Shown here: positions 2,007 through 6,580 of the stretch, in pieces | Numbering within the stretch: position 1 is the first letter of the stretch | Layout of the letters: the number at the start of each line of letters is the position of its first letter | Source: Octopus sinensis | Taxonomy: Eukaryota | DNA: 6,580 nucleotides | Direction of reading: 5' to 3' | Assembly (NCBI RefSeq): GCF_006345805.1 | Contig: NW_021829305.1 | Coordinates: 1 to 6,580, forward strand | The notes under the pieces: model-generated | Database searches by the model: none | The model's input: the letters and a program-made list of their open reading frames with translations, nothing else | What the model was told of the DNA's origin: nothing | Translations under genes and position numbers: made by a program

Positions 2007-2266
2007 CTGCGTTGGAGTCAAATTTATCATACTGGCAAGATGCTCCCGTTCGGGCGCCGATAAGTATTTCTGCTGTTTAAACCGGCGTTCCAATTCATAT
2101 ACTTGTGCTTGAGAAAATAACACTCTTCGTTTACGTCGTTGCGTGATGGGGAACTGGACACCGGGTGGTTTCTGGTCTAAACCACCCAACGCTGACATGT
2201 TTACATGATTCATGGACGACTGCATAGGTGACATTGCACACGAACTGGTGCCCATAAGCCGCGAGA
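2007..2266 (-). CDS. NKX2-1: Internal coding exon of an NK2.1-family homeobox transcription factor (linker + homeodomain residues 1-44)
   Basis: Minus-strand translation is (x)[86 protein letters not shown]. The homeodomain part (2138->2007) matches recalled human NKX2-1 at 43/44 positions (N for H at 39) and has NK2.1 rather than NK2.2 residues (SQAQVY, KQQKY, ASM). Acceptor is TATTTATTTTCAG| (AG at 2268-2267), phase 1; donor is CAG|GTACGT (GT at 2006-2005), phase 0. Length 260 = 2 + 86 codons. Confidence 0.96.
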
Positions 2267-2312
2267 CTGAAAATAAATATCGCCAAATATGAGTCAAGAA
2301 TTGAGTTAAATC

Positions 2313-2316
2313 AATG

Positions 2317-2351
<35 letters not shown>
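2313..2351. repeat. (AAT)n microsatellite
   Basis: Direct reading; about 45 nt upstream of the exon acceptor. Confidence 0.95.
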
Positions 2352-2352
<1 letters not shown>

Positions 2353-2355
2353 TGT

Positions 2356-2524
2356 AGGAGGAGTGGCTGTGTGGTAAGTAGCTTGCTTACCAACCACATG
2401 GTTCCGGGTTCAGTCCCACTGCGTGGCATCTTGGGCAAGTGTCTTCTGCTATAGCCTCGGGCCGACCAATGCCTTGTGAATGGATTTGGTTGACGGAAAC
2501 TGAAAGAAGCCTGTCGTATATATG

Positions 2525-2578
<54 letters not shown>

Positions 2579-2678
2579 GTGTGTGTGTGTTTTTTGTCCA
2601 CCTAGCATCGCTTGACAACCGATGCTGGTGTGTTTACGTCCCCGTAACATAGCGGTTCGGCAAAAGAGTCCGATAGAA
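2356..2678 (+). mobile_element. tRNA-derived SINE (family A here; resembles abundant octopus SINEs), 3'-truncated, with internal (TA)n/(TG)n
   Basis: A-box-like TGGCTGTGTGG at 2364-2374 and B-box-like GGTTCAGTCCC at 2407-2417. Internal microsatellite at about 2517-2590. The segment ~2590-2665 aligns with the reverse complement of ~452-520. Confidence 0.85.
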
Positions 2679-2731
2679 ATACCGCTTTGGATTTTGCCCG
2701 GTGTGCGAACGTTTTAAGCCAGCTCGCCGCC

Positions 2732-2735
<4 letters not shown>
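2679..2735 (-). mobile_element. 5' head fragment of a family-B SINE
   Basis: The reverse complement AGGCGGCGAGCTGGCTTAAAACGTTCGCACACCGGGCAAAATCCAAAGCGGTATTT aligns with 3912-3966. Confidence 0.75.
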
Positions 2736-2767
<32 letters not shown>

Positions 2768-2887
2768 TAAAATAATAAATAATAATAATAATATTAATAA
2801 TAATAATAACGATGATGATAATAATAATAATATAATAATAATAATAATAAATAATAATAATAATAATATATAATAACGATGATGATG

Positions 2888-2955
<68 letters not shown>

Positions 2956-2998
2956 GATGATGATAATAACGATGATGATAATAACATGATAATGAAGA
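2736..2998. repeat. Long (AAT)n microsatellite with (GAT)n interruptions
   Basis: Direct reading; recurring AACGATGATGAT interruptions. Confidence 0.95.
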
Positions 2999-3039
2999 TG
3001 ACTGTAGAATGTAAGTATCATAGGGTTTTTCCCTCAATG

Positions 3040-3372
3040 ATTGACCAAACTATTGAAGCGAGAAGACCAGATATGGTGATTAAGGATTAAAAAACTAAAC
3101 AAACGTTGTAAGATCATAAATTCTGCAATTTTCTATGTTAATAGAGTCGCTACCAAAGAAATTGAAAAAAACTGAGAAATCTCTTGATCTAGCCAAAAAC
3201 CTGATGGGAACTGCGGAAGTCTAAGACTACAATTATTCCTGTGGTAATTGGTGGAGTTGGCACAGCATCCAAAATGCTATCTAACAGACTGGAAGAAATT
3301 GGAATTGAATTTTGCTTTGTTGGCCTGCAAAAATGTACCATCCTATATTCTGTAAAAATTCTAAGGAAGATT
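3040..3372 (+). mobile_element. Decayed restriction-like-endonuclease (RLE) domain of an R4/Dong- or NeSL/CRE-type non-LTR retrotransposon
   Basis: Frameshifted translation gives IDQTIEARRPDMVIKD* / CKIINSAIFYVNRVATKEIEK / KTTIIPVVIGGVGTASKMLSNRLEEIGIE...LQKCTILYSVKILRKI. This resembles the RPD...IIDxAxP...KExEK..KY...IPxVIGALG...LQK...ILRK C-terminus of RLE-bearing elements. It contains stops and frameshifts. Confidence 0.8.
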
Positions 3373-3424
3373 CCAGCGATTTCAGATTTTAGAGCATTAA
3401 AAAGTAATATAGACCCGTGTTCCT

Positions 3425-3820
3425 ACATGACCTTCCAAGCGGGGCCCAGTCAGAATTTTCTTCAAGTTAAGTAGCCCATCGTGCTCAAAAGGTCCCTAAA
3501 TAAAGCTTGTTTAAGGATGATGGACGAAACACCCATGTTTCCAGAGGTGAATTATTGAAACCCCAAAGAATCCCTCTCAACACATGGCTATGATGCTCCC
3601 CCACTACTTCTGCTCGTGATCAGAGGTGCACATATCGTCAGCTACCAAGGGACATGCTCAACTGGTTAAGGTCAAACAACTGACAAGCAAATCTGTGGTA
3701 TTGAGCAGAATATTTGCTGTAGCCCATCTTTTATACCAAGACAAAACAATGTACATGATAACACTTCCAATGAGTTAAGATCAGAAGCCATGAGAGCCAC
3801 TGCCTGGTACTGCATCAGAG

Positions 3821-3821
<1 letters not shown>
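3425..3821. mobile_element. Unclassified interspersed repeat (family C), copy 1
   Basis: 3518-3815 aligns with 5480-5777 at roughly 90% in direct orientation. Extension to ~3425 is inferred from composition and recollection, not from in-window alignment. It is followed by (ATT)n. Confidence 0.8.
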
Positions 3822-3882
<61 letters not shown>

Positions 3883-3910
3883 TATTATTATTATTGTTGT
3901 TGTTGTTGTT
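3822..3910. repeat. (ATT)n grading to (GTT)n
   Basis: Direct reading. Confidence 0.95.
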
Positions 3911-3911
3911 T

Positions 3912-4127
3912 AGGAAGCGAGCTGTCAGAATCGTTAGCACGCCGGGTGAAATGCTTAGCGGTATTTCGTCTGTCTTTACGTTCTGAATTCAAATTCAGCC
4001 GCGGTCGACTTTGTCTTTCATCCTTTCGAGGTCGATAAATTAAGTACAAGTGAAACACTGCAATTGATGTTATCGACTAGCTCCCTGCACACAAAACTGA
4101 GGTCCTGTGCCTCCAGTAGAAAGGATT
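3912..4127 (+). mobile_element. tRNA-derived SINE (family B here), apparently full length, in (TTA)n
   Basis: GC-rich head AGGAAGCGAGCTGTCAGAATCGTTAGCACGCCGGG, B-box-like GAATTCAAATTC at 3985-3996, ending AGTAGAAAGGATT followed by (ATT)n. The head matches the reverse complement of 2679-2735. Confidence 0.8.
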
Positions 4128-4167
4128 GTTATTATTATTATTATTATCATTATTATTATTATTATTA

Positions 4168-4256
<89 letters not shown>

Positions 4257-4258
4257 AT
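4128..4258. repeat. (ATT)n with (ATC) variants
   Basis: Direct reading; tail of the family-B SINE. Confidence 0.95.
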
Positions 4259-4368
4259 CAGAAAGGATAAGGAATACAAAGTGTCCCCGAAGGAATTTGA
4301 GTCCAGAATAAGAAAGGGACATTACCATATAAGGTGTTCATTACTATCACTCCACTCACTTCCGCTTG
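4255..4368 (-). mobile_element. Old, diverged family-B-like SINE fragment
   Basis: The reverse complement TTCTGGACTCAAATTCCTTCGGGGACACTTTGTATTCCTTATCCTTTCTGATAA resembles TTCTGAATTCAAATTCAGCCGCGGTCGACTTTGTCTTTCATCCTTTCGAGGTCGATAA (3981-4038). Similarity beyond ~4310 is weak. Confidence 0.5.
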
Positions 4369-4409
4369 AACCATCTCCAGTAACAACCATTGACAATAAA
4401 CAAACAAAG

Positions 4410-4585
4410 ATATATATATATATATAGATATATATATATATATATATATATACATACATACATATACATATATATATACATATACACATATCCACACATT
4501 TACATATATATATATATATATGCATATACCATATAATTTACATATATATATACACACATAATATATATTACACATATACATATAT

Positions 4586-4639
<54 letters not shown>

Positions 4640-4668
4640 TATATATTATATTATATATATATATATAT
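4410..4668. repeat. Compound (TA)n/(CA)n/(TACA)n microsatellite
   Basis: Direct reading. Confidence 0.95.
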
Positions 4669-4884
4669 TGGAATGTTTAGAGATGATGTACATGTATTAT
4701 ATATTAGAAGAAATGAGGTATCAGAAGATCGGATGGTTTATATTTACAGATATTTATTTATATATTACATTTTTTATATATATATCATATCACTTAGATC
4801 ATTAGCACTTTCTCCCTTTCTAGTGGGGTTTTCAAATCAAAATAATTCCTTATATATATACACACACATATATATATACACATA

Positions 4885-4996
4885 TGGCCTGCTCGCTTAA
4901 CCAGCGGGGTGGCATCATTTGAAGGCTAAAACAATGCGAAGCGCATTGTGACCAGCGATGTGTCGCAACATCTGATAGCCTGGTCGATCACGGTGA
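4885..4996. mobile_element. Probable short interspersed-repeat fragment
   Basis: A ~110-bp GC-rich island sharply bounded by (TA)/(CA) repeats. It resembles repeat sequence I recall from octopus DNA; there is no second copy in the window. Confidence 0.4.
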
Positions 4997-5023
4997 TATA
5001 TACACATATATCAAAAAACTGCT

Positions 5024-5052
5024 ACAAGAACAGCAACAACAACAACAACAAC
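5024..5052. repeat. (AAC)n microsatellite
   Basis: Direct reading. Confidence 0.9.
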
Positions 5053-5223
5053 GATAAAAACGAAAAATCAACAATTTTATATAACATTTATATCTGGAAT
5101 AACATTAAATACATAAAAATGAATGCGTAACAAAAGACAAAAATAAAATTGACCATGCCTCCGCCATTACTGCAAAGCATTCACGCAACGTGAAATCGGA
5201 AGCACTTAATATGTCACACACAC

Positions 5224-5271
5224 CTTCTTCTTCGATCCATGTTGGATAACTCCGGCAGTTCTGGACGAAAT
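5224..5271 (-). CDS. Candidate 48-nt cassette exon of the NK2.1 gene (phase 1-1 reading xFVQNCRSYPTWIEEE)
   Basis: Minus strand reads TTCTGAC (branch-point consensus, A about 29 nt upstream of the junction), then ATTCGTTTCCATTTCATTATTCCACAG| with no earlier AG, then 48 nt, then AAG|GTGTGT. The length is a multiple of 3 and has no stops. It lies in a non-repetitive island between microsatellites. No homology evidence. Confidence 0.5.
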
Positions 5272-5345
5272 CTGTGGAATAATGAAATGGAAACGAATGT
5301 CAGAATATTATAGAATTCCCACCGTCTACGTACACATTGAATTAA

Positions 5346-5479: not shown

Positions 5480-5777
5480 TGTTGAATGAAACACCTATGT
5501 TTCCAGAGGTGAATTATTCAAACCCCAAGGAATCCCTATCAGCACACGGCTATGATGCTCCCCCACTACTTCTGCTCATGATCAGAGGTGCACATATCAT
5601 CATCCCCTAAGGGACATGCTCAACTGGTTAAGTCAACAACTGACAAGTAAATCTGTGGTATTGAGCAGATATTTTGCTGTAGCCCAATCTTTTATAACAA
5701 GACAACACAATGTACATGATAACACTTTCCAATGAGTTAAGATCAGAAGCAATGAGAGCCACTGCCTGGTACTGCAT
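5480..5777. mobile_element. Unclassified interspersed repeat (family C), copy 2
   Basis: Direct ~298-bp match to 3518-3815, with (ATT)n arrays on both sides. Confidence 0.82.
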
Positions 5778-6034: not shown

Positions 6035-6580
6035 TCAATAATGATAATAGTAATAATAACGATGATAATAATAAAGATAATAATATTAATAATAGTAATA
6101 ACAAACAATACTTATAATGATGACATAAAGAACAACGATGATGATGATAGTGGTTGTGGTGGTTGTGGTGGTAGTGGTAGTGATGATGACGGTGACGATG
6201 GTGAGGTTGTTGATGGATAGGAGGAGGAGGAAGAGGAGGTGAGGAAAGGGAGGAACAGCACAATTGATACGATGATGATGATGACGACGACGATGATGAC
6301 AATGAAACAGACGTTGATGTTGAAGATAATGAGGAGGAAGAGAAGGTGGAGGAGGAGGAGGCGGAGGAGGTGGAGGAAGAGGACGCAGAGGGAGAAGATA
6401 ATTGGTACGTTGATGCTGCTACTGCTGCTGCTACTGCTGCTGCTACTGCTAATGATGGTGATGATGATCATGCTTTTGACAATGGCTGTTATGATAACGA
6501 CGATGAAGAATAGGAAGTTTATGAAGATGATGATGATGATGGCGGTGATAATTGTCATACTGGGACTAATGAGGATAATG
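6035..6580. repeat. Compound degenerate trinucleotide low-complexity tract (AAT/GAT/GGT/GAG/CTG-CTA)
   Basis: Successive blocks of different triplet repeats with short non-repeat spacers. Confidence 0.9.

Follow-up and report, generated by a model that had tools for sequence, protein, structure and literature searches.

A 48-nt exon that very probably serves as a coding cassette in the NK2.1 homeobox gene of cephalopods

NK2.1 is a deeply conserved patterning factor of the anterior and ventral neural territory and of the foregut. In the canonical gene (NK2.1 or NKX2-1, TTF-1) a phase-1 intron lies between ...DPRFx(I) and SRLMG or SRFMG, and cephalopods have the same intron. The cephalopod protein also resembles canonical NK2.1 in its TN motif, its NK2 homeodomain, its NK2-specific domain and its C-terminal NGRTW. 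However, the cephalopod intron differs from the canonical one in that it holds an extra exon of 48 nt which splits the conserved motif. Some other described systems come close to this arrangement. Microexons (51 nt or less) occur in disordered regions of regulatory proteins, and the cephalopod exon is likewise 48 nt long, symmetric in phase, alternative and the source of a deeply conserved peptide; its length falls inside a broad cutoff (51 nt or less) and outside a strict one (27 nt or less). In neural microexons that depend on SRRM3/4 the cis signature is a UGC close to the 3' splice site. Another such system consists of the Trp-containing motifs that interact with PBX/Exd, as in YPWM of the Hox proteins and WPAWV in the EH2 motif of Engrailed.

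We analysed a stretch of 6,580 nt from Octopus sinensis (contig NW_021829305.1), which we refer to as the window. Our main conclusion is that positions 5271..5224 on the minus strand are very probably a real, coding cassette exon in the cephalopod gene for NK2.1 (thyroid-transcription-factor-1-like), which gives rise to two in-frame products. The features of the gene within the window are as follows (here and below ^ marks a splice junction):

5224..5271, minus strand: 48-nt cassette exon of NK2.1, phase 1-1, encoding (N)FVQNCRSYPTWIEEE(V)
5272..5305, minus strand: 3' splice region with acceptor AG at 5273..5272, a pyrimidine-rich AG-free tract and the candidate branch point TTCTGAC
5218..5223, minus strand: 5' splice site GTGTGT after AAG, a moderate donor at which a short GT run starts
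2267..5223, minus strand: intron of 2,957 nt that separates the cassette exon from the homeobox exon and is filled with (ATT)n and (TA)n microsatellites and with SINE-like repeats
2007..2266, minus strand: NK2.1 homeobox exon from (V/I)SRLMG... to homeodomain residues 1-44, acceptor ttttcag^TC, donor CAG^GTACGT

The gene and the splice signals of the exon

The exon at 2266..2007 covers the pre-homeodomain segment and homeodomain residues 1-44, and its top matches were NK2.1 or thyroid transcription factor 1-like proteins. Its translation was identical to the proteins of O. vulgaris and O. bimaculoides, its DNA flanks showed 82-87% identity to O. bimaculoides, and a full-length relative matched the Pfam homeodomain PF00046 with E = 1e-20. 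The TN motif TPFSVTDIL, the NK2-specific domain SPRRVAVPVLVKDGKPC and the C-terminal ...ILNGRTW, which are encoded outside the window, were found in the full-length proteins P0339 and P0405. On sequence grounds, namely the NK2-type homeodomain and best matches to NK2.1 orthologues, we assign the gene to NK2.1 (Nkx2-1). An exact search for the ORF of the window returned no match.

Exon 1 of NK2.1 is absent from the window. In O. bimaculoides it ends with ACA A^GTAAGT in phase 1 (locus L027). The gene spans 185 kb in O. vulgaris, and intron sizes at this locus vary greatly among cephalopods. We compared the window to L001, a cuttlefish-like 20-kb piece of ENA ERZ21867824 (contig ctg99646l) with a homeobox exon 92% identical to the transcript L002. 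No mini-exon was found in the 10 kb upstream of this exon, compared to a distance of 2,957 nt in the window, and searches of up to 10 kb upstream of the homeobox exon (blastn, blastn-short and tblastn) recovered neither the island 5130-5345 nor the peptide. The L001 gene may have a longer intron, with only the homeobox exon alignable. The mini-exon was also not found in the two O. bimaculoides loci L026, in which the sequence preceding the homeobox exon is only 296 nt long, and L027, which holds exon 1 and 10 kb that are mostly N.

Read on the minus strand from 5271 to 5224, the sequence of the 48-nt exon is ATTTCGTCCAGAACTGCCGGAGTTATCCAACATGGATCGAAGAAGAAG, followed by GTGTGT. The heptamer TTCTGAC at 5305..5299 puts a candidate branch A at 5300, that is at -29 from the acceptor, and may be the branch point in use. 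The final 25 bases of the intron are 77% pyrimidine and end in CACAG^, and no AG was observed between -56 and the acceptor. The exon is open in all three frames, and translation in frame +2 gives FVQNCRSYPTWIEEE, which joins position 2266 in phase 1 as ...EEE-V-SRLMG. AACATGG also occurs in the exon; its ATG has the A at 5240 and is accompanied by a purine at -3 and a G at +4. The frame of this ATG starts MDRRRSLAAYG... and ends at a stop codon within the homeobox exon. The island around the exon (~5130-5340) is unique within the window, with (ATT)n microsatellites and a repeat copy (5480-5727) on its flanks. An earlier reading of the letters alone (the sequence-only reading) had listed the TTCTGAC, the AG-free CACAG tract, the 48 nt and the AAG^GTGTGT donor, the open frames, the AACATGG, the phase 1-1 join to 2266 and the non-repetitive island, and we could reproduce each of these observations. 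It had left the first codon open as x. This residue is N (A^AT), while the rest of the predicted peptide stood as proposed.

The splice sites were scored with a rough metazoan matrix that serves as a yardstick only. By this measure the acceptor was the top-scoring one among 261 AGs on the gene strand and it outscored the acceptor of the downstream constitutive exon. The donor GTGTGT is off consensus at +4, and its score was reached by no donor other than itself and the true donor of the homeobox exon. No second acceptor and donor pair of equal quality was found on either strand of the 6.6-kb window, so that the splice-site scoring which had been suggested as a check returned this pair as the best one, with the same rough matrix. 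The splice sites of the cassette exon exceed chance, yet their quality alone would not settle whether the exon is real. For description only we mention three other cis features: a (GAA)3 purine run at the 3' end of the exon, the GT run at the donor and a GCATG at +66.

Inclusion and skipping of the exon

Exon 1, which is located outside the window, ends ...DPRFT + A in phase 1, and two splice routes would lead on from it. Along the first, exon 1 would be joined to the 48-nt exon and this to position 2266, to yield ...DPRFT-N-FVQNCRSYPTWIEEE-V-SRLMG.... Along the second, exon 1 would be joined to 2266 directly, to yield ...DPRFT-I-SRLMG..., the junction motif common to NK2.1 from molluscs to vertebrates.

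The product of the first route was found in annotated Octopus proteins, where the peptide occurs with exact junctions as ...NPDPRFT-N-FVQNCRSYPTWIEEE-V-SRLMG.... A first protein search had yielded no protein longer than ~179 aa, and most of its hits were ORF calls from single exons; longer queries led to the full-length proteins. The carriers are CAI9742193.1 (P0268, 'thyroid transcription factor 1-like') and CAI9742194.1 (P0339, 396 aa) in O. vulgaris and XP_014781009.1 (P0340) and XP_014787907.1 (P0341) in O. bimaculoides. The last two are partial models on separate scaffolds, with exon 1 on L027 and the homeobox exon on L026; going by NCBI practice, we presume that transcript data were used to complete the O. 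bimaculoides protein. The O. vulgaris annotation drew on Iso-Seq, RNA-seq, protein alignments and ab initio predictions (PMC10700109). Inclusion in Octopus rests on gene models. The exon had been described as hidden in the sequence-only reading, which does not hold given that it is already contained in the public gene models of O. bimaculoides and O. vulgaris.

RNA-seq assemblies encode the full-length NK2.1 protein with the insert as well: P0405 (397 aa) was represented by 83 contigs, P0247 (397 aa) by 2 and P0408 (412 aa) by 8. Six of the runs, SRR19578103/07/14 and SRR31864756/57/59, are from Sepia esculenta larvae, BioProject PRJNA844162 (PMC11917092), and SRR19578103/07/14 are also listed as Sepia esculenta larvae elsewhere (PMC10466719). 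We aligned the window to the transcript L002. Positions 5224-5271 matched L002 nt 484-531 from end to end with 43 of 48 bases identical, and all five differences were synonymous. Positions 2004-2268 matched L002 530-794 at 81% identity in an alignment that abuts the one of the mini-exon. The match of the 48 nt stopped at both edges and did not extend into either flank. As the limits of the alignment coincide with 5271 and 5224, the predicted boundaries are the boundaries used in the mRNA. The frame-preserving coding exon proposed from the letters, with its peptide at the predicted junctions, is thus borne out: Octopus proteins and cuttlefish mRNAs carry the peptide, and the spliced contigs of the cuttlefish RNA-seq assemblies span the exon edges exactly.

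The product of the second route was observed in the cuttlefish. The protein P0406 (381 aa, 11 contigs) differs from P0405 only by an I in place of NFVQNCRSYPTWIEEEV. At the DNA level, 8 contigs of the skipped form (L004-L011) read ...CGATTTACGA^TTTCTCGTCTTATGG..., with TTTACGA^TTTCTCG at the junction, and 10 contigs of the long form (L012-L021) read ...CGATTTACGA^ATTTTGTCC...GAGGAGGAAG^TTTCTCGTCTTATGG..., that is TTTACGA^ATTTTGTCC...GGAGGAAG^TTTCTCG around the junction. The skipped form lacks exactly the 48 nt and reads DPRFT-I-SRLMG, the canonical junction motif of NK2.1. Since the flanking exons are joined directly in P0406 and L004-L011 with exactly 48 nt removed, this is a true cassette exon in Sepia, and the mRNA form without these 48 nt confirms the alternative use that had been proposed. 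The cassette preserves the frame (48 nt, phase 1-1) and the products of 397 aa and 381 aa are otherwise identical. Both splice forms were found within one BioProject, PRJNA844162. The commonest including form accounted for 83 contigs compared to 11 for the skipped form. Contig counts are a crude proxy for the isoform ratio and the cuttlefish assemblies are from whole larvae; judged in this crude way, inclusion prevails in these larvae.

In O. bimaculoides exon 1 ends with A in phase 1, and skipping would therefore yield A^TC, i.e. Ile, in Octopus too. We infer that Octopus also skips the exon. Among the four annotated Octopus proteins, all of which are gene models, we saw no skipped form.

A Logan contig similar to O. 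bimaculoides (P0414) reads exon 1 and then ...DPRFT-SKYSLRQPPCWIKLCY into intron 1. This read-through indicates intron retention or pre-mRNA and is consistent with the exon 1 donor A^GTAAGTAC in L027.

Constraint, distribution and competing readings

We estimated sequence divergence between Octopus and S. esculenta by Nei-Gojobori counts for the mini-exon and its two neighbours:

Mini-exon: pS 0.65, pN 0 (0 changes at 37.3 non-synonymous sites)
Homeobox exon: pS 0.74, pN 0.025
Exon 1: pS 0.52, pN 0.018

Between octopus and cuttlefish the mini-exon has 5 synonymous and 0 non-synonymous differences, with the synonymous sites saturated. That the peptide is unchanged despite this saturation implies strong purifying selection since the split of Octopus and Sepia, and the insert is constrained as tightly as the homeodomain. 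The absence of non-synonymous changes against saturated synonymous divergence also excludes a non-coding or an out-of-frame reading. We considered an unusual conservation of synonymous sites in the mini-exon and rejected it, as its pS of 0.65 compares to a median of 0.656 in 15-codon windows of the flanking exons. The higher nucleotide identity of the mini-exon is due to codon make-up only.

The distribution of the insert was studied in an alignment of 32 NK2.1 sequences from a chiton, bivalves, gastropods, nemerteans, brachiopods, an annelid, arthropods, amphioxus, a frog and a bird in addition to the cephalopods. None of the 27 non-cephalopod proteins aligned carried the insert. Their junctions read DPRF(A/T/S)(I/F/L)SRLMG or near variants, and those of frog and bird DPRFS(T/S)ISRFM, in agreement with the earlier statement that vertebrate NKX2-1 crosses this junction without such a peptide. 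The skipped cephalopod form DPRFT-I-SRLMG is close to the DPRFAISRLMG of bivalves, nemerteans, annelids and arthropods. The cephalopods were sampled by Octopus and cuttlefish. As the exon is present in both Octopus and Sepia, it is common to Octopodiformes and Decapodiformes. The exon had been proposed to be lineage-specific. This part stood (0 of 27 non-cephalopods), and its extent is at least the coleoids, represented by Octopus and Sepia, rather than octopus alone.

Other molluscs have sequence at the same place. The Littorina saxatilis NK2.1 isoforms X2 and X4 (P0294, P0125), which are predicted models, show an insertion at the same DPRFA^SRL junction with V before SRL, and the insert of X2 (relative to X4) is 44 aa long with an unconvincing similarity to the 16 aa of cephalopods. 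A gastropod-like transcript (P0263) has CEYV at the DPRFx^SRL junction and the chiton Leptochiton (P0232/P0234) has SYAAV. All inserted forms in molluscs end in V before SRL. The intron at the NK2.1 junction may repeatedly host alternative coding sequence in molluscs.

Two readings would deny that the exon is a coding part of the mRNA. A stretch of 48 nt that is open in three frames is unremarkable and long introns are rich in decoy splice sites, as would be expected of a chance pseudo-exon that is never used. However, an exon with exactly these boundaries is found in spliced mRNAs and annotated proteins, and no non-synonymous change has accumulated against a saturated synonymous divergence. 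The L002 alignment, the cuttlefish contigs and the selection counts together refute a pseudo-exon, to which we give virtually no chance. The sequence-only reading had itself offered an exon of the 5'UTR, or a uORF read from the AACATGG at 5240, as an alternative, and the purine at -3 and the G at +4 of this ATG would suit such a start. On the other side, the exon lies in frame +2 about 120 codons into the CDS in all full-length transcripts, all differences between the species are synonymous in that frame, and the ATG frame MDRRRSLAAYG... hits its stop in the next exon, inside the homeobox. We rejected this alternative as well because the exon is internal to the CDS and not upstream of the main start codon; its probability is close to nil.

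The alternative with most weight accepts that the exon is real and coding and takes it to be constitutive in Octopus, with skipping confined to decapodiforms such as Sepia. All four annotated Octopus proteins include the insert, among them both O. vulgaris isoforms, the acceptor scored higher than the one of the downstream constitutive exon (rough matrix), and even in Sepia the commonest including form with 83 contigs outnumbers the skipped form with 11. Against this, skipping keeps the frame and restores the ancestral DPRFxISRLMG, Sepia skips an exon that encodes an identical peptide, the donor GTGTGT is non-consensus at +4, and only gene models represent Octopus. On balance we regard a constitutive exon in Octopus as unlikely, though it deserves more credit than the two readings above, and we prefer a cassette exon with two in-frame products.

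Consequences for the protein and other contents of the window

The two products share the frame, the TN motif, the homeodomain, the NK2-specific domain and the C-terminus, and they differ by 17 residues which replace a single Ile. The insert follows the TN motif and precedes the homeodomain by ~45 residues. The annotated proteins and mRNAs confirm the 16-aa acidic and aromatic module that had been proposed upstream of the NK2.1 homeodomain. In AlphaFold2 models the homeodomain alone was confident, whereas the insert region showed a pLDDT of 35-45 and no secondary structure. The insert is therefore predicted to be part of a disordered N-terminal linker, and owing to the low confidence and the missing secondary structure the model is uninformative for the insert itself. 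It may act as a short linear motif, or it may break one, namely the conserved DPRFxISRLMG, and an effect on cofactor binding or transactivation would be expected rather than one on DNA recognition.

With respect to the microexon signature, no UGC was found near the 3' splice site of the cassette, the nearest TGC upstream being at -125. This speaks against the classic signature of SRRM3/4-dependent (eMIC) microexons. With respect to the PBX/Exd motifs, the Y-P-T-W-I of the insert followed by EEE shows a loose likeness to their pattern of aromatic, Pro, any residue, Trp and aliphatic. Like the Trp-containing motifs it stands upstream of the homeodomain in a disordered linker, but unlike in Hox proteins it is YPTWI and not the canonical YPWM. 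To our knowledge NK2.1 is not a known PBX partner. By analogy, the exon could be a coleoid innovation that toggles a Trp-containing SYPTWIEEE motif for an alternative cofactor, for example a TALE protein of the PBX/Exd type, while disrupting the ancestral DPRFxISRLMG; we consider this specific reading improbable.

The existence of the exon is already known from public gene models and is not a discovery. A description of it was not found in the literature searched on octopus, cephalopod and Sepia NK2.1 and on octopus microexons. Undescribed in the searchable literature seem to be its use as an alternative cassette, its occurrence in both coleoid branches and the constraint on its peptide, which is as tight as that on the homeodomain. 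An unchanged insert of 16 residues, optional in at least one of octopus and cuttlefish, that interrupts a motif shared from molluscs to vertebrates points to a cephalopod-specific modulation of NK2.1. If the reading as a Trp-containing motif were true, it would link the switching of isoforms in a conserved patterning gene to the group of invertebrates whose brain is the most elaborate. We judge the exon to be of moderate interest for cephalopod evo-devo. It also illustrates that a real short exon can be recovered by reading the raw sequence alone.

The remaining parts of the window are largely repetitive. On both strands of 6112-6558 there are long open frames (e.g. 148 aa on the minus strand) made of trinucleotide runs of the CAT, CAG, CCT and GAA type, in which no signs of coding were seen. 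On the minus strand of ~1010-1215 an open frame reads ...FTPAPERRLRGHSKKLYLRRFHLNRRRGAFSVRVADPWNKLPDEIVKLPTTVHFKVSLDQKWPELFA up to a stop codon. It resembles the C-terminal tail of an ORF2 of LINEs or other retroelements; this fragment had no Pfam match. No tRNA-like gene was detected by ARAGORN in the SINE-like repeats of the window. A tandem duplication of ~300 nt (1212-1511 and 1551-1850), with copies 95% identical at a spacing of 339 nt, lies in the intron by which the homeobox is split after TPTQ. In an older O. bimaculoides model (P0002, UniProt A0A0L8FQ48) TPTQ is spliced to a sequence that reads LQMYPNYVAQSQRRSKRFY... and not to VKIWFQN...; its counterpart in the window lies at ~850-924 on the minus strand in the same intron, with 82% identity between the two species. 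The extra exon of this model is probably spurious. An interspersed repeat is present in two copies (3518-3766 and 5480-5727) that are 90-93% identical and each adjoin an (ATT)n microsatellite, the second of them just upstream of the island of the cassette exon. Pieces of other repeats, at 320-543, 2517-2678 and 3917-4051, are also present at unrelated sites of O. bimaculoides loci.
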